From Kudoa neothunni (Eukaryota > Animalia > Cnidaria), in NCBI GenBank assembly GCA_964304625.1, contig OZ199839.1:7280407-7344406 (forward strand): a stretch of 64,000 bases of DNA. Direction: 5' to 3'. Below are positions 23,918 to 52,205 of this stretch, one piece after another (the first letter of the stretch is position 1; the number at the start of each line of letters is the position of its first letter). Made by a program: the position numbers and the translations under genes. A model generated the notes under the pieces. The model saw only the letters and a program-made list of their open reading frames with translations. It was not told the origin of the DNA and searched no databases.

Positions 23918-24620
23918 AGTTAAATCATTGGAACTATAATATGCACCCCTTCATATCGCAAGTTAAAATTTTCTGCAGTCATAACTTTTTTAAAATTTAA
24001 TTGTTTATCTATAAAATCGTACATTCTATTTTTTTCCCGCGCAAAATAAAGTTAGAATTAATTTAAACTGGATTTTGGAGAAGTACATTTCAAGGATTAT
24101 GATATTAACATAGAGAAATTAAGTACCGTCGTAATGAGCCCAAAAGTAATTCTCCACATTTTATTACTTAGGTAATAAAAATTTAACTCATATGTATAAG
24201 TTAGTTTCCCTTTTGATAATTAATAACGAAATAAAGTACTGAAATAAATAGATTAAATAATAGATAAAGAGAAAATGTTAAATTACGCAGTATCGAACCT
24301 TTACTGTACATACATAGTAGATATGCGTGCACATTGGCGCCCTCATAATACAGTAGAATCGGACGTGACTTGGTAGCGTCATTGATCATCGATCGCGTCG
24401 TTTGAGGTCGTCTCTGAATGTTACGATGAATCAACTAATAATAAGATGCACACGCTAACAAGAAGTAAGAAAAAAATTAAAAATGAGGAAGAAAACCAAC
24501 GCGGCAAACTTCAGTTCCATCACAAATTTGAAAAATGTAGCAACTTCGAAGTAACCCACAAAAAGCCAATACTTTTCTGATATAAAATTTGCAAAAACTA
24601 TTCGATAAACTATGTATTTA

Positions 24621-24656
24621 GAGCCGGAATAAGGATCGAATAAAACGCATCAGCAC
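24621..24656 (-). pseudogene. Strongly decayed tRNA-Ile-like 3' half at the 3' junction of the older retrotransposon
   Basis: GAGCCGGAATAAGGATCGAATAAAACGCATCAGCAC vs TAGCCGAAATGGGAATCGAACCCACGACCTCAGCAT: 23/36 ungapped identity, same strand and same position relative to the element. Confidence 0.5.
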
Positions 24657-27600
24657 AAACATGTTTACCAGAAAATAATCATGTTTAATGTTAGAAAATA
24701 TTATATTATGTAGGAGAGTCAAAATTTGATGGTTTGGACAATGGGTGAGGATTGAACAGATAGGTCTATCGGCGGAACTTTAGGAGAAAGGGCGTTATGC
24801 TTCCAAATTTTGTTGTGTCCATCCAGCCCAGATATGGTAATTTTCCTTAAAGATCCTTGCCTGTTCTTTTTGTGGGGTCCTTTTTTAATGGACGAAAAGA
24901 TGTCTGTTCAAATGGTGTTGAGGTCTGAGAGCCATGAAATTAACCCCATATCTCAGATCTTGTAGTAAGCCCAGGTTCCGGCTGGTATTTCTGTTCTTTG
25001 CGTTTTCTAGCGTGGTCTTTTCAATTAATATCGTTTTCTTAACAAAATATTACGACTGTAATGTAATATCGGCCTTCTTTTCCTTATTGTTAACAAACGA
25101 AATATCCAGGCGACCATTCAATAATATATATGAGGTCGCTTGAATGACCCTAAATGTCCAATCTCTCTTGAGTTTGAGTGTCTTTGAAATTATTTCAAAT
25201 ACTTAATCATGGTGGCGCCTAAATAGACACCACAACATAGATATGCGCTGTGTGGACCACCTTGGAACATATGCTTCATAGATCCAATTCCGCGGGGATA
25301 ACGGGGACAATGGATGTTGGAAGCGATATTTAAAGTTTAACTGCACATTTTGGAACGATACATACCCTCCCTATCATAGTGAACCTATAACTTTGAATAG
25401 CAATCTATTCAATTCGTAACCATGAGTTGGATTCCTTAAGTAGGAGGAAATAGTCCACAAACCTGCGTTGGTCCAGAAGAACTCACCGAGCTTTATTTTT
25501 ATTTTGCTAGCATCAACGAAGTCGCTTGATGCGGGAAACTTTATGAGTGCGGAAAGTTGAGATCTTTGGAGGGGGAGTGTAATGTTGGAATACCTAGAAC
25601 GGTGTTTCCTTATTGTTTTAGGAGTTCGCATCTCCTACAAAGGACAAATGCGGCTTCTATATTCCCATATCAAAAACTAATCAAGACTTGGATGATGGGA
25701 AACATTACGATAAATATTTTCTTGGGTTAAGCGTCACATATGCTTTAATGAAACAATGCATTTATTTTGCAAAGAAAGTTAATAATATGTTGAAAATAAA
25801 GAATGATAAAATATATTTTTATAAATAAAAAAAATATTTATTATTTTTTCTTGAAACCATACCATCCCAGACTCTTCTTTCTTGACAACTATAGCTATAG
25901 ACAAAAGGTCATTTAATGGGGTTTACAAGGAATTCTTCTACTTGTTCACACTAACTTATCTATCTAAACTAACCATCGTGAAAAATTAATTAACTTCAGT
26001 GATGTGATATTTTATTTTCTATATCTTATGAAAAATACGTTGAATTGTGGACCTCAAATAAAGAATTGAAACTAAAATATATTACGGGCTTGCCGGAATA
26101 AAGATTTTACTATAATTTGTAAATTATTGCGGCCAGCTAAATGTTTTCTTTTGTCTTTTCTTTATTTAAAAATAATTATTCATAAAGTTCCACATAAATC
26201 ACATCTGTCCTGTAATTTTGTTTGCTTCGAAACATATTTTTGTTAAAAATTAATCAGGATAATCTCACACATGATCATTGTTGTCATTAACTCGTTTCTG
26301 CGTCTCTAATAGGGAAACCCTTCTGTATAATTAATAAACACGCATCGAAATCGTCATCCATGGCGAAATCAAAAAAAACATCCCCGGTCACGCCCAATTT
26401 TATGATTAAAAGAATAACGCCAACGAGATCAAATAAATTATACTAATAGTCAAAATAAATTGTAGGGAAATAGCACCCCATGACCTCAGTATGCAAAAAC
26501 CGGTATTTCTACTTGTAAATAAATAAAGTGTTATAATTTAATATTTTTGTGTGTAGAACCAAGATTGATGGATGGGTGTAGTTGGGTGGACGTAGGTGTA
26601 GGAGATACGTTTGGCCTCTTCTTGAGGGGCTTCTAACAGCATTCGTTATTGTTGACGATGGGAGGTGTATAGAATATTTTCATTTCTTTAGCCTACTACG
26701 TAGCAGCATCCATAAAACAATTATATCAAAGATCACTATCACCATGATCGGTTCTACACAAAATGTTCCTTAGGACCGGTGTCGTCTCTTCTAAAATAAG
26801 GCTTTGTTATTCCTTCTTTTTCTGGTAATTCTCCAAATAGTTTGAGTTTGATCTATTTGGATTTCCACTGGTCGATGTGGTAGGAACAGCATTGGGAGGG
26901 CCATCAATAACTTGAGGGGGATTAGCAACGTCGTTAATTTCGTCTTGAGTTTCAACTGCAGCATTGCTGTCTTCATCAATCTGAGGTTGATTAACGTTGC
27001 TATCAGTCGATTGAAATGGAGATGATGGGTTATTTCGTATTTCAGAAATAAAAGCGGCAACATCTTGCGAAGTTACGTCAATATTACATTCTTCAACTCG
27101 AGGAGTTTTGAATGTATGTCATCATCAGAGGAAATGTTTGTAAACATTGTGGCAAAATATGTAGAGGTGTTGGATGGCATTGATCTTTTGGTAACCATTG
27201 AAAAGTTATCATCAAAGTCAGAAGAATCATCCAGAATGATATTGATATTTTAATTTTGGGGAGTTGATTCAGTAATTCAGTAGTAATTGTTTAGGTGGGA
27301 ATTTGGGGAGGAATTTGTTTTGATGGGAGAATGGTAGGAGGTGTAGTTGTAGAAGAAGATAGGATCATCACATCTTCATTACTGGAGTTAGAAGAGGTGG
27401 ATTTGGAAATTGTAAGTTGGTTAGAATCGGTATCAGTAGTTAAGGTATTTGAGACATTTTCATCAGCAACTAGCTCATCTACATTAGTAGATACTACATG
27501 AGTAGATCCTTGCGGAGCCTCCTATTTAGCGTCACTGGCGAAAACAGAATATAAATCGTCATTAGAAGCAATTTCAGAAACAGCAACAACAACGGAGTTT

Positions 27601-28250
27601 ATGTTTATAGGCTTGACGTTGGTTGCTTCACAATTAGTGACTGAGTCGTTCGTAAGAGTTAGATGGGTAGCTGGCTCATTAGGAGATAAATTAGGGAGCA
27701 AATCGTCAATTATTATTGATAGATTCGTGAAAATCTTCAACGTTTTACCATCTCCTTCAAACAAATGTCTGTTAAAATACAATTTAACGGCTTATTCACG
27801 TATCTAATTGGCAAGGATGAAAAGTTTCGAAGAGAGATTGTTAATACACACTCTCTGACGTTTATCCTACAAAACTAACGGTGGTAGTTCTTCTGAAACA
27901 TTGTCAGAAGGGCTACTAGTGATATTAATCAATGCTCTGCGATGTTCTTTGATAATGGAGTCCTCGTCGTCGACCAACTTAAGTTCTCTCCACACTGTAA
28001 AACTTCGGACGTATTCACCTACCACTTTCAACAGTTCAGGCAGACGTAACTTTGGACGGCTCCTTTCTTTAAATTGTTGGTATTTAAAGTAATAACAACG
28101 AATGACGCGCGAGAGACCATTGATCGCATCGTGTGTGTCCATTACTGAAAAGTACGAAGAACGAACCGGCGAGCACGTAGACTGAACAGTGATCGGCGAA
28201 TTTTGCGTACCTTTGCGCACATGCGTAATTTATTTTCTTCGTTTATAAAT
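24657..28250 (-). mobile_element. Old, internally deleted RLE-type non-LTR retrotransposon related to 31638-38557
   Basis: 3' part ~24750-25650 has remnants of the zinc knuckle/RH and RLE motifs (CPRYP..KHMFQGGP, RRHHD, ADIT, ARKRKEQKY); 26790-28220 is low-complexity S/N/T/P coding sequence; N-terminal block QFKERSRPKLRLPELLKVVGEYVR resembles QVKDRGKKLPPVVKSVAKFVR of the younger copy; RT not found. Confidence 0.7.
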
Positions 28251-30353: not shown

Positions 30354-31391
30354 GGTTAACTACACTATACGTGTACCAACCTTGGAATCCGATGAGAACG
30401 TTCGGTAAAAATTGGAGATGCATTTAATTTGTATATAATATCAATAAATATCTACAATGTATGCATAATTCTCGTTTGTAATATTTCTTTCGAAAAAGAT
30501 AGTCTGATATATACTCAGGCAAGGTTTATGAGTTTTTGTTTGTGGCTTCTTCGTATTTACGTTTAAAAGCGCCCCAAATAGACTCAATCCGGTTGGTATG
30601 GACTCCTTCACTTGAAACAAACTGTCATTTATGGATAACTCTTCCATGAACGAAACCTAGACCCTCTAACCTATTGTATCCAGCCCAACCGTCAGTACAT
30701 ATTGTAGAACCTTCTACGTTATCAACTATTATGTTCTCAAGAACATTCTGATTCCTGTAACGGGATATTTTAAAAAAACAATCACCATTTTTGTCTATTC
30801 CCCAATTAACCAGAACTGTTGGTTCTTCAAAATTCTCCCCATGTTGTACTTTCTTTTGGAGACAGCAGTCTCGTCAATTTGAACTACAACGTTCTCGTCT
30901 CCAATTTTTGTGCACTCTCCATCCAATTTCAAATCACATTTTCCCATTCTGCTATGGTAGAAAAGGATGCGATATCGATATGATGTTGTATTTCTTCATA
31001 GGTGGTGCTGGGACTTTTGACAGTATAGAGGAGAAAGACCAAATATTTCCACAATGGAAGGTTTGATCGTTCGAAAATATTGTATTTTCTAATTGAGCAT
31101 CTTTTTCGGCAAAATTTGCAATAAAACTGATGACTATTACCAATGTCCTTCCTTGTCACTATTTTCGTCATCGAGCCACAAGAACATTTAAGATAGCTCC
31201 TCAAAAGTCCGATATTGATCAGAGTTTCAATTATATAATTTATGTCATCTCGAAAATAACCATAGTTAAGTATTGTTATGATATTTATATTTTCCAAAGT
31301 GAACATTCTTTTAAAACTCGACGTGGCGCAATTATTTCCCGAGAATATGTGATAGCTCGCTAAGTTTATATACATATACTGTAGTTTGGCC
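30354..31391 (-). mobile_element. Internally deleted Merlin element (same family as 62607-63645)
   Basis: GG-starting ~30-bp TIRs, perfect 8-bp TSD CTTCTAAG (30346-30353, 31392-31399), CSCG...YCKFC...SIRK..IFERS zinc-ribbon N-terminus and fragmentary DDE region. Confidence 0.85.
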
Positions 31392-31601
31392 CTTCTAAGA
31401 ACAAGCAAGCAAAAGTAGAGTGGGAAAACGTTAAAATTCTAAGAGAAAAACGAGTCGTCAAACTTCGGTTTGCACCCAAAAAACGCAACTTCCCAAATAA
31501 GCTGGTTACAACAAACCTGGGAACACCAATAGAAAGCACTAGTCTTCTAGATACAGAATATGCCAAATTCAATGCATAAAAAGATCGCGAATACGAAAAA
31601 T

Positions 31602-31637
31602 TAGCCAAAATGGGAATCGAACCCACGGCCTCAGCAT
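31602..31637 (-). pseudogene. tRNA-Ile 3' half (nt 38-73) at the retrotransposon 3' junction, followed by T5
   Basis: 34/36 identical to 38564-38599; starts at nt 38 of the anticodon loop; ATTTTT follows the discriminator. Confidence 0.92.
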
Positions 31638-31790
31638 AGAAATAAAACTACATAAACTAATGTTTTTTATCTAATAGCCATTTTTATTTGAGTTTGGATC
31701 CATACCTGCAGCAGTTTGGCTAAATATTATGCACACCCGCGGTTTCTCGCATATGGCACAATATATTTCTTGGGGGAAGCTATCTTCAGG

Positions 31791-34700
31791 TTATTTGTTT
31801 ACGTGGTGTTTGAAAACACCATGGCTTGATACCAAAATTTGGGTTGTTATCGTCTTCTTCAGACGTTTCGCAGCTCGTTTCGGAATCCCAAGCAGTTTGA
31901 ATATCTCATTATTGGTTGAGAGATGGCTTCCGAGAGATCCAAAGACGAAGCATTTGTTTTCCACTTTAAAATTTAGTCGCTCTAAAAACAAAGTTTCATC
32001 CTTGTACTTTCCTTCTTTTTCGTTTCTGACTTCTACCAATCTCTCAGGGTTGGATTCATATGGGATGGTTATGTCGGGAATGAAGACAGTCATTTTATGT
32101 TCATTAAAAGGAACCAGATCCGAGCGTCTGTCAAAGCCGTCAATGAATATTTGATCCTTGAAGAGTGTTTGATTTCTCTTCGGCTTTATCTTGTCGCAGA
32201 TGAATTCAAGAATTTTGTTGTGGCGAGAAATTATTGTTTGTTTATTGTAGGGACAGCCATTCAGAATATGTGATAGATTCTCATGGGGATGTGAACAATG
32301 GCGGCAGTTTGAGTCTTGGATTCGCTTGATTTTGTATAGATTGCTCTTTGTTGGGAGGACGTTTAACTGAGCGTGTATGGCAAATTGGGCTGAACTAACG
32401 CTTATGTGCCCATTATGTATCCACGCGTTGAAACATTTGTCATCCGATAAGGAGATGCACGCCTTGCCATGTTCAGGGAGGGACTTCCAGTTTTCATAAT
32501 GTTGTGCTTGAATGTACCACCGCAAAAGTTTTATTCGGGCGGGTGTAAGAGTTGGGTTGATCCGCGCTGTAGAAGGGGGTTTCTTCAAAGTGGACTGCTC
32601 GAATCCGATGTACAAGTGAGGAACGAAGACAGATTTAAATTTGAAATTTAACTACTTCCTATATTTTCTTTTCGTAGGGTGGAGAAGAGGGATTTGACGT
32701 CTCGAATTCTTGGTAGGTTTTCATCTGAATTGAGAAAGTCAGCAACCCGTGGAACTTGGTTTGGGTCTGGGATTCTCTTGAGGACGACGTTTTCCAGAGC
32801 ATCGATGGCGAGATTGTTGATTCGATCATCATCACTTGCAATTAAGCCCAGTGCGGAAGAGATTCTCAGTGCTCAATGATCGCTGACATTATCACGTATG
32901 CCGAAGCCTTCGAGTTTGGTTGGGGTGTATAATGAGGATTTGTTAGTTGTTTTATGAAGTCGATACCAGTTGCTGACATGAGAGTTAATAAAACGTTGGA
33001 GCGACTTGAGTTCTTCAATGCGGAGCTGCGTAGTTTTGAATTTAAAATCCAGCATTGGCAACAAATATATTTTTAGAATTTGGAGTTTCATGTAGGGGTA
33101 CAGGTATGAATTGGAAATTTTAGTGAGTGCAGACTTGAATTTGTCAATGGTTGTATGGAGGTCTTGGAAAAATTCGAGATTCTTATTGGTGCCCAAGTAT
33201 TTGTAATACTCATGCAGCTTCATCATGGGGATATTTTCTCCAAAGAGTTTGAGTGGCTTGTGGAAAGATGGATGGTTGGTAACTTGAAGATGTCGATGAT
33301 ATTGGGATTGGATTGATGCACATTTGGAGGCATTAGCCTTCGTATCTATTTTGTTTAGGAATTCCTCCAGGAGTTTGAGAGATTGTTCCGCGTTTTTTCT
33401 AGAGTTAGACATTAGAACTATATCATCTGCATATGCTAGAACCGTTAATTTTGGTCCAAATTTGAGTTGATAGCCGAGGTCTCGTGTGTCAATATCTTGT
33501 AGGAATTGGTCAATTGCCAAATTAAAAAGTAGAGGAGAGAGAGGGCACCCTTGACGTACACCTCTGCCATTCATGTAGTGTTTTGCTGTGTTTTGTTTTT
33601 GGTCTCTCACAATGTTGAATGAATTCTTGTATAGATGATTCACCAAATGGATAACTTTGTGTGGAACTTGTTGGCTTATAAGTTGACTGATAATTTTCCA
33701 ATGCGGAACGGAATCAAACGCTTTCCGTAGATCAATCCATGTGAGATAGAGGTGAGTATGGTTTCGTTTATGATCATGAAGCACTTCTTGTAAGGTGTAT
33801 GCGTGTTCGATACAACCCTCACCAGGTTGGAAGCCTTTTTGGTTAGGGGATAATTTGATTAATTCACTGGTTTTGGAATTTAGAGCAGACATAAAAATTC
33901 TGTAGATAGTTTGTGTAACACAAATAGGTCTATAATCGGAGGTGGAGTTTGGATTTGGAGATTCACTTTTTGGAATTAGGACCATTCTCGCTTCCAACCA
34001 TTGTTTTGGAACTTGTTGGGCATTGAGGATCTTGTTGAAGATGGGCGTGAGGACGTGTTCCACGGTAGGCAGCGTTTTCCAGAATTTCATGATAATGCCA
34101 TCCATTCCAGAACTTGTATCAACTTTAGCGCGGAGTACAGCATGACGTATTTCGTTTTCAGTAAATATAAATGCATCATGTGAATTTTCTGGATAGATTG
34201 AAGGTTGGGATAGGTTTGGCGAATTTGAGGGATTGGTTGATGGTGACTTGTGTGTGTGTGTGTGTGTGGCTTTTTGGAAGAATTTGACTGTACATTTGAA
34301 TTCTGGAAGGTTACGTTCGTTGGTTCTTTATCAGATTCATCGTGCATGAATTCATTTGGGTCTGTGTGGAAACCATCACTCTGAGCTTCAGTGGTTTGAT
34401 TAGTGTTGTTACAATCGTCTTTCATCATTTGAGTAAGGCTTTCGATACCTTCAGCGAATTCATCTGGTGGGACTGGTGGTGGGAATTTCAGGGACTTGAC
34501 GATTTGTTCAGCCGGAGCTTGACACCAGATTGGTTTTGGTTGGGTGATTTCTCGGACACACTTTTTGGGATTCAATTTAAATAAACTGCGTAGGCGTTTT
34601 GCATCCTCGTCATTCCATGGGCTAGTTGGGTTGTGTACATCAGTCGTCGGTTCCTCGTTTAGGCCATCTATTACGACTGGTGTTTGATTTGTTTTGTCAT

Positions 34701-37700
34701 GTTGAGAATTTTGGATGATCACATCGCTGTCATTATCATCTTGGATTTTGGGAATTAATTGATCATTCACTGTAAGTTCATTCAAAACAGGTATATTTTC
34801 TGGATTTTGTGGATTATTAGAAGACTTTGGTCGGAAAGGGTAGGAACTATGAGCCTGTTTTGTAAGGATAGGATTTTTGATTTTGGGGATGTAGAACATT
34901 TTAAGTGACTGAGCATGGGCAGTCGCCTGGCGAATAAAATCGTCATAATGTTCATCAATTGGCATATTTGAAGAGTCATTCTTAACATTAAGAGCTACTA
35001 ATTCATTCATGCATGCATCAAGCTTTTCGCTGAGCTTCTGTTTATGGTCATAGTAGTCTGGATATTCTTTACTGTTAACATTATCATTGTTATTCTCCAC
35101 ATCTTGATTTTTGTCGTTATCAGCAATAGTCTTATCTGTATCATGTTTATCATTATTATTTAGCATAAAATCATCGAATTCAATGTCAGTTGGATTATTT
35201 GTGGATATGTAGGAAGGTTTGTCGTTGGGTATTTTGGGGATCGATGGTTTATGGGTATCATTATCGTTGTTGTTTGCTGACACTTGCGAAGAGGTGGGGT
35301 CGTTTTTAGGCCGCTCTTTAGAATGCTTGGAGGTTGGAGGTTTTTTGAAAGTTGATCTTTTGAGCGGTTTGATGATAAATTTGGCTTTTCCTTTAGAAAT
35401 GATGGACTCCATAATTAGCGAGTCTTTTGTTTTCGGATTTGAGTTAGAATTGGAGTTTGAGATAGTTGGAGGCAAAATCGTAGTTGGAAGTATTTGATTT
35501 TTGGTCTTCTTTTTTGATACACTTTTAAAAATATTTTGCAATAGAACAGATTTGATGTTGAAGATGTTTGGAGTAGAGCTTTCTTGGGAGTTGACAGATT
35601 CTAGTTCTAATTGATTGTTAGTGATTGGTGTTTCAAATTCTAATTGTAATTGTTCGGCTGCAACTCTATTCATGGCTAGCGCGAGTTCTCTTATATGATC
35701 ATCATTATTACAAGGAGTGAGTGATGGGGTAGACGGATTTAGGAGATCATAAGTTGATGTTTGAGTTTGGATTTGGTCAGAAGATTCCATGACTGATTGC
35801 TGTGTTGAATCAATAATGATTGTTTCAGGGGATTCATCATTTAGATGATTTTGGTTATTGAATGACTTTTGTTTCTGCTCAGATAAGAATTCGTTCACCT
35901 CTTGAGAGTCCAACTCCATCACTTTGCAGAAACCATCATTATAATCGGAATCTGAATCTGGGTCAGATTCGGAGAGTTTGGAGAATTTAACTTGTTTGGC
36001 TTTAGGGTGGTACAATATGCTCAATTCTTGGGATTTGGATTTCTTGCTAGTAGAGCGTAGGTTAATTAGGTTTTCTTTAGGAGTAGTGGCTTGATCTTTT
36101 AAAGTGGAATTGTCCCTTTTGCATGGGGCAGGAATAGAAATAAATGCTGCGGCTGTGGGTTTGGAGGAAGAAGAAGAAACATGAGGATTTTTATTGGACA
36201 GTCTAGGGGATTTATCCAACGAGCTATCTTGATTATTAGGGGAGGTGGGCTCATTTGGGGTTGTGTTAGATTGAGGATTATGATCAGAGTCAGGGAATGA
36301 ATTATTTAAAAGGGAAACCTTATTGAGGGAAGGGTTCGAATTAAGATTAGATTTCTTAGAATCATGAGTAGGATCGATATTAGATATTACACTTTCTGCA
36401 CGAATAGTGGCAGAAGAGGTGTTATTAACACTAAAAGAGGAAAAAGTTGCACTAGATTTATCTATGGAATTAGGATTTGTGTTATTATTAGAATTAGATG
36501 TGTTAATATTTTCAGAGGTAGTTTTATTATTGCTATTAAGGTCGGCTATATTTTCAATATTATAATTAACTAAAGTAGAAGTATTAAAAGTAGTAAAATT
36601 AGAAGAAAAAGAGGAAGAAAGGTTAATATTAGAATTAGAATTAGTAGAACTATTAATGTTTAATTTGCTTCCTACTAGAGTGGAATTTGTATTAATATTA
36701 AGGTCGCGCTTCTCATTAAAAATAGAATCATTAGAAACGTTAGAAATACAAAAGTCTTTTGTTTTGTCAACAGAGATACTTTCGGAAAGATTCTCATGTT
36801 GACTAACAGAAGATTCTGTATTTAATGAATTATTAAAAGAGTCATGTAAATGATTATGTAAAGAAACATCATTGCCACATTGAGAATTTGCTAAAGAGAA
36901 AGAGTCGCGTTGAACAACGCGAGAAGCTTGATTAGGGGAGAATTTGGGTGGAACGTTGTGATTCCTTGGAAGCGGCCAGTTTGCGTCAGCAGATGAGGAG
37001 TCATCATTAATGTCTTGATCGGAGTTGTAATTTGATTCATCCTGATCGGAATTGGAATTGGAATTGATGGTTTCGGTAACAGCGTACCTTGAGTTTTTGT
37101 CAACATGATAAATTTTGTAGTTATTGTTAGATGAGTTGATCAGAGATTCATTAATTAAGGGACTTTGTGCAAAGTCATCAATATAAGAGTGGTGAATGTC
37201 TTCAAGGATTTGACGATATTCATCCTCATCAATTTGATGCTCTGGCTCCTCTATAGATTCCATTGTAGAATTTCATTGTAGATTCCACTGCAGATTCCAT
37301 TGTAGATTTAGCGGGACTTTCACAAATTTCACCAAATAAAGGATGCTCGTCGTCTGGTAAAATTTGTGGTGGTGTACGGGATTTAATGAGATGTTGGGTT
37401 AAATTTGAAAAAATTCCAGAATTATTAGTTAAAGTTTGCGGACTCAGCGGCTTACTATTCTTAATGCGCTCTAAATTTACTTGAGGGAAACATTCCAAAA
37501 CAGTATCAAAAATTTTAAATGTTTTATAATACGAATTGTTGGTTAAATCAACTACACCACACGCTTGCTTAATAATATTATCATTTAAAATTGGTTGCTC
37601 AGGAATATATTTGGAAAAATCAGTATTAATATCTGTTAAAGTTAAATTTAAATTGGATGAATTGTTAGCCAAGTTAGAGCGATCATGTGTATTGTTAGAA

Positions 37701-38430
37701 ATTGAATTGTTTTTAACATTACCTATAAGCGAAATGCTATTGGAAATTACATTAAGATTAAGATTATTAGAGATATTGTCAGTTAAATTAGTCAAATCTG
37801 GAGAGTTTTCAAAATTGTTAATATTTTCAACAGATTTAAGATTAGTATTACTATAAGCAACGTCATCAGTTTTATCGTGATCAATATTTTTAAGATTTTT
37901 ATGTAAAGATGGATTATTACTCTCTAAAGTACAAAAGGGTGGATTATTGTTAGAATCAGGAAAATTAAAATTGGATTTTGAAGGATTATATACGGAAAAT
38001 GATGGAGTTTCTAAAGAATTACTTTGAGGGAAAAGGGAGTCAATGTATTTTTGGTAAATAGAATCTGATGGAAATTTTGGCCAAAGCTTCAAATCAGATT
38101 CAATCAAAATGCAGCCATCCCTTTCTATTAACTTCTCTGGAAATTCACATAAATCTATCTCATTTTGGATAGTATCGAACAAATTGGACAAAATAACATC
38201 TCTAGAAATGAGTGATTCATCGATAGCTTTCATGAGGAGTCTCTCACGAGCATCTTTAGATACGTTTGAAGATGACGGCTCGTCAAATTGTCAAGCTGAA
38301 TATGATAAATCTTCAAACGCTCCATCAATCTAACAAATTTGGCCACCGACTTCACCACTGGAGGTAACTTTTTACCCCTGTCTTTAACTTGAATACACGC
38401 CGTATAGTGAATTAGCATACACCTCGGCAT
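31791..38430 (-). pseudogene. Interrupted single large ORF (~2200 codons) of the retrotransposon
   Basis: ORF pieces 38230-38430, 37229-38233, 34087-37263, 32873-34105 and 31791-32615 can be joined through small indels (~38290, ~37270, the (CA)10 tract at 34249-34268, ~32650) and one in-frame TGA at 32873-32875. Confidence 0.8.
34249..34268. repeat. (TG)10/(CA)10 microsatellite inside the retrotransposon ORF
   Basis: Directly visible; (CA)9 would fuse the upstream ORF to the RT frame. Confidence 0.9.
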
Positions 38431-38563
38431 ACTCTCCGTCGAAAACTCAGCTTACTGCATCGACATAAACACCATTAGACCCAGGACAATGTAATCAATC
38501 AAAAGCAACTAATGAAAAATAAATTCAACTACTTTCTTTCAATAAGCGAAAAAAAACAAAAAC

Positions 38564-38637
38564 TAGCCGAAATGGGAATCGAACCCACGACCTCAGCATT
38601 ATTAGTACCGCGCTCTAACCGACTGAGCTATCCGGCT
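38564..38637 (-). tRNA. tRNA-Ile, anticodon AAT, intronless, with downstream T5 and T8 Pol III terminator runs
   Basis: AGCCGGA-TA-GCTCAGTCGGTTAGAGC-G-CGGTA CTAATAA TGCTG-AGGTC-GTGGGTTCGATTCCCAT-TTCGGCT-A folds into a full cloverleaf with A and B boxes. Confidence 0.95.
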
Positions 38638-50170: not shown

Positions 50171-52205
50171 TAGGGTTGGAAATTTTCGACGTTTATTTTT
50201 CTGTAAATCGACGGTATTTATCGATCGAAATAAAATTTTTTTCAAATTCGACTTGTATCGGCTTATATGTAAATAAAATTTGTAAACTCGATTTTTATCG
50301 ACTTTTATTAAAAGAAAGAACAACGCTAAATAAAAAGAAACCAAAACAGATTCGATAATCGTGAATTAAAATAATTATAATGGACCATTGAAATTTAGCA
50401 TCGCCAACATTGTAAGGCGATCATCACCTAAATTTATTCTTTCTTTTCCGAAAACGTATCGGAGTTTTGAGAAACTCCTTTCAACATTGATTGATGACAC
50501 TGGCAGGGTCAATATATCTTGACAAGGTATTGAAAGTTGAGGTAAAACGTTTGATCGCGTTTTCCAAAAGTTAGGATCGACTGATCTTGTTAAATCTTTC
50601 GCATCTTTACATAACAACTCGAATTCATTCTTAAGTTGTTGTCTGTCTTCAATCTGTAAAAAGTAACAAAGATCATCAACATTCAAATGTTCAATTGAAA
50701 TTATATCGTTTGAATCAAGATTTTTCACAGTTTCAAAAAATGCACTTGAGGGTAAACACTCATTTAGATTGTTAGATATTGAACATTTTAGTTCATTAAT
50801 AATTTTTTCGCATAAATGCTCATATTTAAACAGAAAATTACTTCTACATTGAAATGGAATGAGACCGATAATGTCCTTGTGATTTTTTAGCAAATAGTTC
50901 TCGTCGATTCCAAAGTCATTCTTTATCCAGTCACAAACTTTCGAAATACAATTCTCTTCGGTTTCAATTATTTTTGAAAAATCAAATGATGGAGTAAGTG
51001 CATCGATTAAAATATTTAAAGAAAAGTAAAAAACATTAAGGTCAACTGCTTCTGTTTTTAAAAACTCATTAAGTTTTGCTCCAAATTTATCTCCTTTTAT
51101 ATCTTTTAAAAAGTCGACAACTGCTGGGTAATACTCCTTTACTTGCTTTATACAATTAAAGAAATTATACCACCGTACATCTAATACTCTCGGAATTTCT
51201 TTGAAACTATCAAAATTATTATTCTTAAGGTGTATCAAAAAAGAGTGTTTTGCTTTCCTATTTTATGACAGTAGGGATGAAAATTTCATGCAAAAATTTC
51301 TAACATCCTTAAAGTAAAGGTCAACAGCTTTTTGAACAGCTCCATGAATAACATGTGAAAAACAAGAGATTCTGGCGATATGAGGATATATAACTTTCAA
51401 TTCGATATAATATTTTTTCATGTAAGATGCCGAGTCAGAAATAATAGTGATACAATTTTTCCAATCCAAATCATATCGTTTTAGAATTTGAGACAAATGG
51501 CTAGTAACAATAACAGAATTACATTGTATAAATCGCGAAGAATCTAACATAATAGTTTTGCGTCTATCTGAGGAACTATCACGGAAGCAGGCCAAAGTGT
51601 TAAAAATTGGTCGGTTTTTAGCATCTGGGGACTCGTCAATTATTAAACTAAAACGTAAATCAGACATCATTAGTTTAATAGTGGTCACGGCTTCCTTATA
51701 TATCGTTGGAAGATGCTTTTCAACTAAATATTTTCCTTCAGATAGCGACCGTGACGCAGGACAATACGTAGAAATAAATTTCCTTAGATTGCTTTCTTTA
51801 TTAATCGAAGAAAATGGGAGGCCATCAAAAGCAACTATTTTAACCATATCTATTTCTATTTTATTTGAATTCGTCGCGTCTCGATAAAATATATTAGTTA
51901 GAGGGTTTATTTTCGACAAATTCGACTTGATGGAACAATGTTTTTGAGAATTAACGTGCTCCTGTAGTCTATTTTGTTTCGTAGGTATCGACATTTTGCA
52001 ATATCTACATATTAGTACATCACCAGCAGCTTCTAAATCACTCCATTCAGTTAAATAATTGGTTATTCCACGTCGTTTCCTTCCCATTTTTGCATGTGTC
52101 TAATGCGGTAACAACCGTCGAAAAAAAATAAAAACCGGGGAATTTTTGCAAATTCGACGATTTAAATCAACGAAAATCGATTTAAATCGAAAATTTCTAA
52201 ACCTA
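50171..52205 (-). mobile_element. Near-intact hAT transposon; ~570-codon transposase (50375-52087) with one in-frame TAA at 51263-51265
   Basis: TIRs TAGGGTTGGAAATTTTCGA / TAGGTTTAGAAATTTTCGA; perfect 8-bp TSD ATTATAAC; CRYC..H..H finger, IIDES, SDSASYM, CFSH, RW, LPVSSINVERSFS dimerisation motif. Confidence 0.93.

Follow-up and report, generated by a model that had tools for sequence, protein, structure and literature searches.

Non-LTR retrotransposons of Kudoa neothunni lodged in tRNA genes at a position that leaves the split gene whole

A retrotransposon that lacks long terminal repeats (non-LTR) and is of the restriction-like endonuclease (RLE) type is lodged inside the tRNA-Ile(AAT) gene in a 64,000-nt stretch of the Kudoa neothunni genome (assembly GCA_964304625.1, contig OZ199839.1, positions 7,280,407-7,344,406 of the forward strand; hereafter the window), and the tRNA gene stays whole because its 3' half is duplicated. 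Judged by sequence similarity, this Ile element belongs to a set of related lineages, at least 13 in number, that occupy different tRNA genes in the same manner. The kind of element is already known: RLE retrotransposons that are specific for tRNA genes and make a long duplication have been described. The gene-restoring register, the single-copy tRNA targets and the range of no fewer than 13 tRNA species occupied appear to be new. By the usual account, site-specific retrotransposons persist because they strike multicopy genes, the loss of which can be borne. The four target genes tested here exist in one copy each, and the element would survive by rebuilding the gene that it splits.

On the minus strand, the order is the whole tRNA-Ile gene, G-T5-G-T8, the 6,926-bp element, tRNA nt 38-73 and A-T5 (Table 1). 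An earlier reading of these nucleotides (the sequence-only reading) had claimed this layout, with a ~6.9-kb element lacking poly(A) between tRNA-Ile and a 3' half, and ARAGORN, Rfam, a repeat finder and direct inspection of the sequence agree with it. The element terminus ...TTATTTCTA abuts tRNA nt 38 with no poly(A), and the position of the element in the tRNA is nt 37/38, at the 3' edge of the anticodon loop, where that reading had placed it. The target gene, which had been called intact, is complete upstream of the element according to ARAGORN and the sequence itself; it contains the upstream copy of the duplication (nt 38-73), which is the canonical Ile sequence. The downstream half, with nt 38 at 31637 and the discriminator at 31602, matches the gene at 34 of 36 positions, and of the two transitions that separate them one makes the G5-C68 pair G-U. 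Between positions 31000 and 39200, the repeat finder detected no LTRs or inverted ends and a single long-range direct repeat (31596-31637 versus 38558-38599; 42 nt, 39/42 identical, spacing 6962). The claimed 42-bp duplication with three mismatches was thus recovered as a repeat, but the T-run is not clearly within the exact duplication: past the discriminator the copies have only xTTTTT in common, followed by an indel-containing match, and the trailer behind the whole gene is similar, not identical, to the one behind the downstream half. Chance is an unrealistic source of this layout because ten other loci in the genome share it, mostly with perfect duplicates.

The Ile copy is old, dead and single. 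Comparison with intact relatives by tblastn follows one former open reading frame (ORF) across frames 2, 1, 2, 1 and 0, and the ORF pieces lie at 38233-37229, 37263-34087, 34105-32873 and 32615-31791 on the minus strand; the damage amounts to at least four frameshifts and one stop within the reverse transcriptase (RT) match. A 763-bp probe from the 3' end (31638-32400) matched its own copy only in the genome. A short conserved block stands directly ahead of the RT. The ORF 32615-31791 contains zf-RVT (Pfam) and was aligned by phmmer to the C-terminal CCHC and RLE region of the R2 proteins 9nl3/9dou (5e-19), with the motifs C..C...H...C, D-L-V, D-I-T and K..KY in place. Together with RVT_1, these matches uphold the earlier identification of an RLE-type non-LTR retrotransposon; the features of that group that were found are a non-LTR-type RT, a C-terminal CCHC followed by a PD-(D/E)XK RLE, a precise 3' junction and no LTR or terminal inverted repeat.

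Table 1. Features of the Ile locus in the window (coordinates of the 64,000-nt stretch)
Feature	Position	Strand	Basis
Complete tRNA-Ile(AAT) gene	38564..38637	-	ARAGORN; Rfam RF00005, 64.5 bits; sole tRNA called in the window by both
Trailer of the whole tRNA-Ile gene (G, T5, G, T8, CGC); RNA polymerase III terminator supplied here	38546..38563	-	Sequence, junction alignment
Non-LTR retrotransposon body, 6,926 bp, formerly one ORF, now at least five frame segments	31638..38563	-	ORFs, tblastn to intact relatives, repeat scan
Remains of the N-terminal helical domain conserved in the family, interrupted by a frameshift	38033..38460	-	tblastn to Asn2 relative aa 1-138, 34-47% identity; family alignment
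Long Asn/Ser-rich low-complexity middle region, no Pfam domain	34087..37263	-	ORFs, Pfam
Reverse transcriptase domain	33308..33970	-	Pfam RVT_1, 1.8e-39, residues 46-266 of the 34105-32873 ORF
CCHC knuckle (CRHC...H...C), then RLE motifs (RRSDLV ... PDITIPYE ... KEGKYK)	32001..32306 (approximate, computed from ORF positions)	-	Pfam zf-RVT; phmmer
3' untranslated region with the family CATTAG motif, terminal ...TTATTTCTA	31638..31790	-	Sequence, family comparison
Downstream copy of tRNA-Ile nt 38-73	31602..31637	-	Sequence, DNA search, junction alignment, repeat scan
A+T5 behind the downstream half; next ~15 nt align to the upstream trailer only with indels	31596..31601	-	Sequence, junction alignment
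Probable relative, older and strongly decayed, whose end lies close to a marginal tRNA-Ile-like half (~24620-24655)	24620..28250	-	tblastn, RLE part E 3e-8, N-domain E 0.015; weak

The genome (40.26 Mb in three chromosomes and an 18-kb contig) was searched with the element end and the RT, as the sequence-only reading had proposed; the Ile copy proved unique, and the RT piece gave ~60 matches at 40-59% identity, of which many fall within open frames 1,600-2,240 aa long and several lie 5-6 kb apart. Of the 18 relative loci analyzed from this search, 12 have a tRNA gene immediately 5' of the element and in the same orientation, a different one at every locus (Asn, two Met, Phe, Trp, Gln, Cys, Lys-TTT, Lys-CTT, Ser-AGA, Thr-TGT and Thr-AGT). 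The 3' 30-mer of the tRNA recurs 4.2-7.5 kb downstream at ten of these 12 loci, mostly without mismatch, and the 5' 30-mer recurs downstream at none of them. In all 11 lineages whose junctions were read, the duplication starts at tRNA nt 37-40, and the elements have a common 3' end, ...TTGTAT(A)ATTA, behind a conserved CATTAG motif and a small hairpin. The remaining loci analyzed are inner units of tandem arrays, in which a matching half follows each unit and the tRNA 5' half occurs only once, at the array head. The genome-wide tRNA list adds three tRNAs that lie 2-2.6 kb upstream of degenerate RT matches on the same strand, and in total an RT element follows the tRNA at no fewer than 16 loci (15 of the 38 tRNAs listed, and Met2). 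Proteins with 82% and 66% identity to those of the Gln elements are encoded on two contigs of ERZ795007, an unrelated public assembly; on one contig, two tandem elements have tRNA-Gln-like halves between them, so that the tie to tRNA-Gln is not confined to this genome.

The sequence-only reading had noted that elements of this kind are often specific for multicopy RNA genes; the target here is not one. Searches of the genome at the DNA level found one full-length gene each for tRNA-Ile, Phe, Gln(TTG) and Cys, accompanied only by halves covering nt 37/38-73 (one such half for Ile); the single further match of the tRNA-Gln search is an 83%-identical tRNA, itself beside an RT match. An Rfam tRNA scan gave 38 tRNAs among the 63 best candidates scored, which suggests a small, near-minimal tRNA gene set in this 40-Mb genome. 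The rationale of a multicopy safe harbor is inapplicable to the four targets tested, and an insertion that did not rebuild the gene would remove its sole detected copy.

The family appears to be a live clade with recent activity. Eight relatives have intact single ORFs of 1,638-2,238 aa, and units u1, u2 and u5 of the Gln array are 100% identical over 4.0-5.3 kb. Raw reads agree with the assembled arrays: in run X1, the k-mer depth at tRNA-Gln is 4.6 on the 5' half and 27-33 from nt 37 on, a step that fits an array of six to seven units and puts the boundary between unique and repeated sequence exactly at the Gln junction, and the run contains 98% of the words sampled from the Ile stretch. As X1 possibly comes from the same sample as the assembly, it gives raw-data support and not that of an independent individual. 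In one foreign DNA run and two metatranscriptome runs that carry the same species label, the tRNA-Gln element drew no reads; this is no test of its silence.

In an intact relative, the RT plus the CCHC and RLE region aligns to R2 proteins at 2.6e-77, its best matches among solved structures; phmmer with a family protein returned R2 and LINE-1 ORF2 structures, the C-terminal region of a Gln relative matched R2 at 3e-12, and the CCHC and RLE motif is present in seven of eight intact relatives. Pfam found only RT-related domains in the Ile and relative proteins, with no AP endonuclease, integrase, transposase or tyrosine/serine recombinase among them. The N-terminus consists of a moderately conserved helical domain of ~150 aa followed by ~800 aa rich in Asn and Ser; its first ~1,000 aa gave no Pfam match in five intact relatives, and neither a C2H2 pattern nor a Myb motif was found there. 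An AlphaFold model of the helical domain has three long helices (mean pLDDT 69), and a Foldseek search of the model against the PDB gave no hit below E 0.29. The N-terminal C2H2/Myb and the 28S rDNA insertion of the R2 clade are thus absent, the target being a tRNA gene, as are the N-terminal zinc fingers of the NeSL clade (and, in nematode NeSL, the Ulp1 protease), in place of which stands the helical domain without a fold match.

Outside the family, identity falls to ~30%, and three of the nearest outside proteins lie between U2 snRNA genes. [quoted passage not shown] The earlier assignment was to an R2/NeSL type; the nearest outside relatives are Utopia-like, on the NeSL side, and not true R2. 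A quick maximum-likelihood tree (SH-aLRT support only, midpoint root, no Repbase references or named NeSL/R5/LIN sequences, Artemia row dropped) answers in part the earlier suggestion of an RT phylogeny with Repbase clades: all tRNA-linked elements form one clade with support 100 beside the Utopia-like group, and R2-type sequences of Triops, Anthophora and Mnemiopsis fall outside the group that joins the two. Copies at the same tRNA mostly cluster in this tree. The Lys-TTT array, however, holds two distant lineages, and the Ile and Met elements nest within Asn lineages; targets have therefore switched.

These observations can be brought together in a model. Insertion would leave two copies of tRNA nt 38-73, one completing the gene upstream of the element and the other stranded downstream. 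The rebuilt gene would remain a whole RNA polymerase III (Pol III) unit, its T-run terminator lying in the first ~20 nt behind the tRNA, at the 5' end of the element, whichever of the two routes discussed below produced the duplication. Members would re-enter their own locus, building head-to-tail arrays with tRNA halves between the units, and each lineage of the clade is tied to one tRNA species at the same position. The locus anatomy, the rule common to the family, the protein domains and the single-copy status of four targets are shown; the use of target-primed reverse transcription and the positions of the nicks are what we infer for these elements.

As to the origin of the second half, the sequence-only reading had offered a staggered cut or a half borne by the element; both remain live, and we lean to the latter. 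In the reading that we favor, with a probability of roughly 55%, the half, or at least the terminator trailer, would be copied from the element RNA and joined by annealing, with or without a contribution from a staggered cut. The element RNA would begin with the half and/or the trailer, and the end of the cDNA would anneal to the target's own 3' half. This preference is modeled on R2, in which, as is reported from the Eickbush laboratory, a co-transcribed stretch of the target at the 5' end of the RNA can help to form the 5' junction.

The Gln array provides the central evidence. Unit u2 is a zero-mismatch copy of u1 and is preceded by the half and trailer of the head gene; behind it stand a variant half, different at two acceptor positions, and a trailer different at 10 of 22 nt. 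Such unlike flanks favor the RNA-borne route because a fresh staggered-cut insertion should have identical ones. The variant half precedes the diverged unit u3, its overall difference from the head type being about that between u3 and u1, and in both the Gln and the Lys-TTT arrays the trailer variants track the element lineage behind them. At the Met and Phe loci, the halves are identical at 36 of 36 positions and the trailers, clearly related, differ by several indels, which fits a trailer that was captured long ago and is carried by the element instead of being duplicated at insertion. In lineage a of the Lys-TTT array, no in-frame ATG precedes the conserved N-domain except one within the tRNA half, and the T-runs leave the frame open. 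The tRNA-Gln(TTG) gene (L040:2382-2455) has two adjacent G-U pairs in its acceptor stem; the deeper variant Gln half would form Watson-Crick pairs with the 5' strand of the gene, which fits an imported 3' half, and yet another half is of an intermediate type (the variant halves end at C2:7579644 and C2:7605288).

Several points weigh against an RNA-borne half. The ~40-bp duplication of the nearest published case, LIN15_SM in tRNA-Arg (PMC4640811), is most simply taken for the product of a staggered cut. Unequal crossing-over in the arrays could yield the u2 pattern, and mosaic units exist in them. The 5' untranslated regions (UTRs) are only 50-170 nt long, with no recognized promoter or ribozyme; a scan of the element 5' ends with Rfam, in the window and at the loci of 15 relatives, turned up neither a ribozyme nor any other RNA family. 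The T-runs behind the halves would stop Pol III, so that a transcript including the half needs a Pol II start, and none has been placed. Against the model as a whole, transcript ends, nick sites and empty alleles were not seen, and the three extra DNA and RNA runs were without reads of this organism. The Ile lineage is single-copy: its junctions alone cannot show specificity because the copy is dead and single, and its specificity would rest on the 12 sister lineages at other tRNAs.

A stronger form of the RNA-borne reading, which we regard as speculative and rather unlikely, is that the element RNA carries the tRNA 3' half together with a replacement terminator, that insertions overwrite the 3' part of the gene, and that the carried half guides targeting by pairing. 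Retargeting by the capture of a new half would then explain how at least 13 tRNA species came to be occupied despite the lack of recognizable DNA-binding fingers, and the 3' part of a single-copy essential tRNA would evolve as retrotransposon cargo, as the G-U pairs of tRNA-Gln hint.

The main alternative to an element-borne half is a pure target-site duplication, a serious possibility if short of an even chance. An antisense nick at nt 37/38 and a sense nick ~36-38 bp downstream, at the tRNA 3' end, would be followed by fill-in that duplicates nt 38-73; the element RNA would then begin just behind the tRNA, and the T-runs would be coincidental. Precedents exist in planarian LIN15_SM, which makes its ~40-bp duplication between a 3' junction at ~nt 26 and a 5' junction at ~nt 65 of tRNA-Arg and whose 3' end (aattgtataataataa...) resembles that of the tRNA family, and in the reptile Utopia families with their 20-bp duplications (PMC4640811). 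The exact duplication ends no more than 1-2 nt past the tRNA 3' end (Met +1 nt, Phe +2 nt, Asn +1 nt), and distant lineages at one tRNA have the first 9-20 nt of the trailer in common. A staggered cut accounts poorly, however, for Gln u2, identical to u1 and yet flanked by unlike halves and trailers (the Lys-TTT head unit behaves likewise, more weakly), and for the Lys-TTT lineage a start codon within the half; nor does a fill-in ending at the tRNA 3' end explain why the element-side trailer resembles the native one in Met, Phe and Ile.

Explanations other than these two routes are improbable. In the least implausible of them, which is still very unlikely, there is no ongoing retrotransposition: each tRNA was entered once, in the distant past, and the arrays grew only by unequal crossing-over and gene conversion. 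The restriction of each lineage to one locus, the mosaic units, including those in which the unit behind a young copy matches its first 223-924 nt and then diverges, and the tandem units linked to tRNA-Gln on the ERZ795007 contig would all suit it. Against this stand the many lineages with intact ORFs of 1,600-2,200 aa and conserved RT, CCHC and RLE motifs, the two distant lineages that have the Lys-TTT site in common, and the nesting of Ile and Met in Asn lineages, which requires moves to new tRNAs. It is barely conceivable that the tRNA belongs to the element, as a Pol III head or a carried gene, or that a recombinase integrated the element like a bacterial tRNA-site island, since the duplicated 3' half at a tRNA, a hallmark of integrase-mediated islands, and the tRNA at the head of each element are countered by the array structure, which contradicts this reading (one tRNA 5' half per locus, with halves recurring between units), by the absence of integrase and transposase domains in Pfam and by T-runs that would stop Pol III right behind the tRNA. 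Equally remote is an assembly artifact, a collapsed or chimeric join mimicking a duplication: the read check covered the tRNA-Gln locus (L040) and neither Ile junction, but the same architecture recurs at more than ten loci on three chromosomes, the depth of X1 steps at tRNA-Gln nt 37, and the Ile words are present in that run.

Three tRNA-specific families of the NeSL clade have been described, namely NeSL-1_TV (tRNA-Pro), LIN15_SM (tRNA-Arg) and LIN25_SM (tRNA-Glu) (Kojima and Jurka 2015, PMC4640811). The sequence-only reading had counted a few tRNA-targeting families as known and named no tRNA-Ile target; none was found in the literature searched, and one of the published families makes a ~40-bp duplication. 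LIN15_SM and LIN25_SM (R5/LIN lineage of the NeSL clade, Schmidtea mediterranea) are likewise tRNA-specific RLE non-LTR elements, and LIN15_SM resembles the tRNA family in its A/T-rich 3' end (aattgtataataa...), the lack of poly(A) and the ~40 bp of tRNA duplicated. With its junctions at ~nt 26 and ~nt 65 (S6 figure of PMC4640811), however, the gene is not rebuilt and neither tRNA copy is whole, and its targets are multicopy tRNA-Arg paralogues. The Kudoa elements are set apart from this published description by the register from nt 38 to the 3' end, the rebuilt gene, the single-copy status of the tested targets and the range of no fewer than 13 tRNA species occupied. NeSL-1_TV of Trichomonas vaginalis is also an RLE element with a specific tRNA target (PMC4640811); neither target restoration nor a radiation over several tRNAs is reported for it. 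A gene-restoring tRNA register, a tRNA-Ile target and a many-tRNA radiation of an RLE family were not found in the literature beyond that paper, a weak absence given incomplete coverage.

Utopia, a U2 snRNA gene-specific group of the NeSL clade, is alike in its arrays, the nearest outside relatives having the order U2-element-U2, and differs in its target and in its N-terminal zinc fingers, which the tRNA family lacks; its 5' junctions are variable, with duplications of up to 20 bp (PMC4640811). Arrays of U2, RT element, U2, RT element and U2, with full-length U2 matches, were seen in contigs of other public assemblies (L055:334-8664, and also L054 and L057); they are a Utopia-like counterpart of the tRNA arrays. 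R2, specific for 28S rDNA, has the same single ORF with RT, CCHC and RLE, and differs in its target and its N-terminal zinc-finger/Myb region; no match to the HDV-like ribozyme was found in the tRNA family with Rfam. R9 of bdelloid rotifers, a member of the R2 group with a 28S target, is said to make a 126-bp target duplication (Gladyshev and Arkhipova, 2009); it is a precedent for a very long duplication, with no known restoring role. Integrative elements at the 3' ends of bacterial and archaeal tRNA genes reach the same outcome, in which a tRNA 3' part is supplied or duplicated and the gene survives, by means of tyrosine or serine recombinases and att sites, whereas the tRNA family has an RT and an RLE. 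In compact genomes, tRNA genes also serve as landmarks or targets for Dictyostelium TRE, yeast Ty3 and the Dada DNA transposons; TRE and Ty3 insert outside the gene via Pol III factors and Dada is a DNA transposon of multicopy genes, whereas the junctions described here lie inside the gene at nt 37-40 and not at a fixed distance from it.

A eukaryotic retroelement thus reaches the solution of the bacterial tRNA islands with unrelated machinery. Within one clade, a cut at one and the same position in no fewer than 13 tRNA species would offer a natural series for changes in RLE target, a matter central to present work on retargeting R2-type proteins so that they insert genes. Should the RNA-borne route be true, a mobile element repeatedly rewrites part of a host tRNA gene.

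Some further observations concern the arrays and the 5' ends of the elements. In the Lys-TTT array (C2:1.006-1.039 Mb; L044, L043), an ORF is open from an ATG in the tRNA T-arm through the terminator T-runs, and in the head unit the frame is open across the whole tRNA. At four loci (L042:8029-8950, L048, L046 and L045), 223-924 nt of the element start, 85-99.8% identical, are repeated behind the downstream half, followed by divergence or a sharp break; such units retain only a 5' end and therefore do not come from ordinary 5' truncation. The short unit u4 of the Gln array was considered as a 5'-truncated insertion and rejected, as it keeps the full 5' end and has an internal deletion; it therefore does not help to tell the two routes apart. 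The 5' UTRs of the Gln lineage contain an intron-like GTAAGTT...TTTTTAG just ahead of the start codon (L040:2542-2575, L053:119-153 and L053:5155-5188), which is kept between this genome and the ERZ795007 contig and is unexpected in an element that is copied from RNA, except where the unspliced RNA serves as template. A motif close to GAATCTAACGATG occurs at or just ahead of the start codon in the Cys, Ser, Thr-AGT, Phe, Lys-TTT, Trp and Asn2 elements (e.g. L042:3882-3897), in 5' UTRs that are otherwise unalignable between many lineages. On an ERZ795007 contig (L052:3540-3600), no more than 40 nt separate the stop codon of one element from the start of the next, and neither a 3' UTR nor a tRNA half nor a 5' UTR lies between them; this reflects either a real deletion or a join made in assembly over a short repeat.

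Elsewhere in the window, the marginal Ile-like half at ~24620-24655 has a local alignment score of 26 against a shuffle maximum of 24, and ~3.4 kb of unexplained sequence separates the decayed relative (24620-28250) from the half at 31602. Among the other long ORFs of the window, Pfam recognized nothing but a hAT transposase: two adjoining ORFs on the minus strand (50375-52087) contain a hAT dimerization domain, DUF659 and a C2H2 finger, and are probably a hAT transposase gene split in two.

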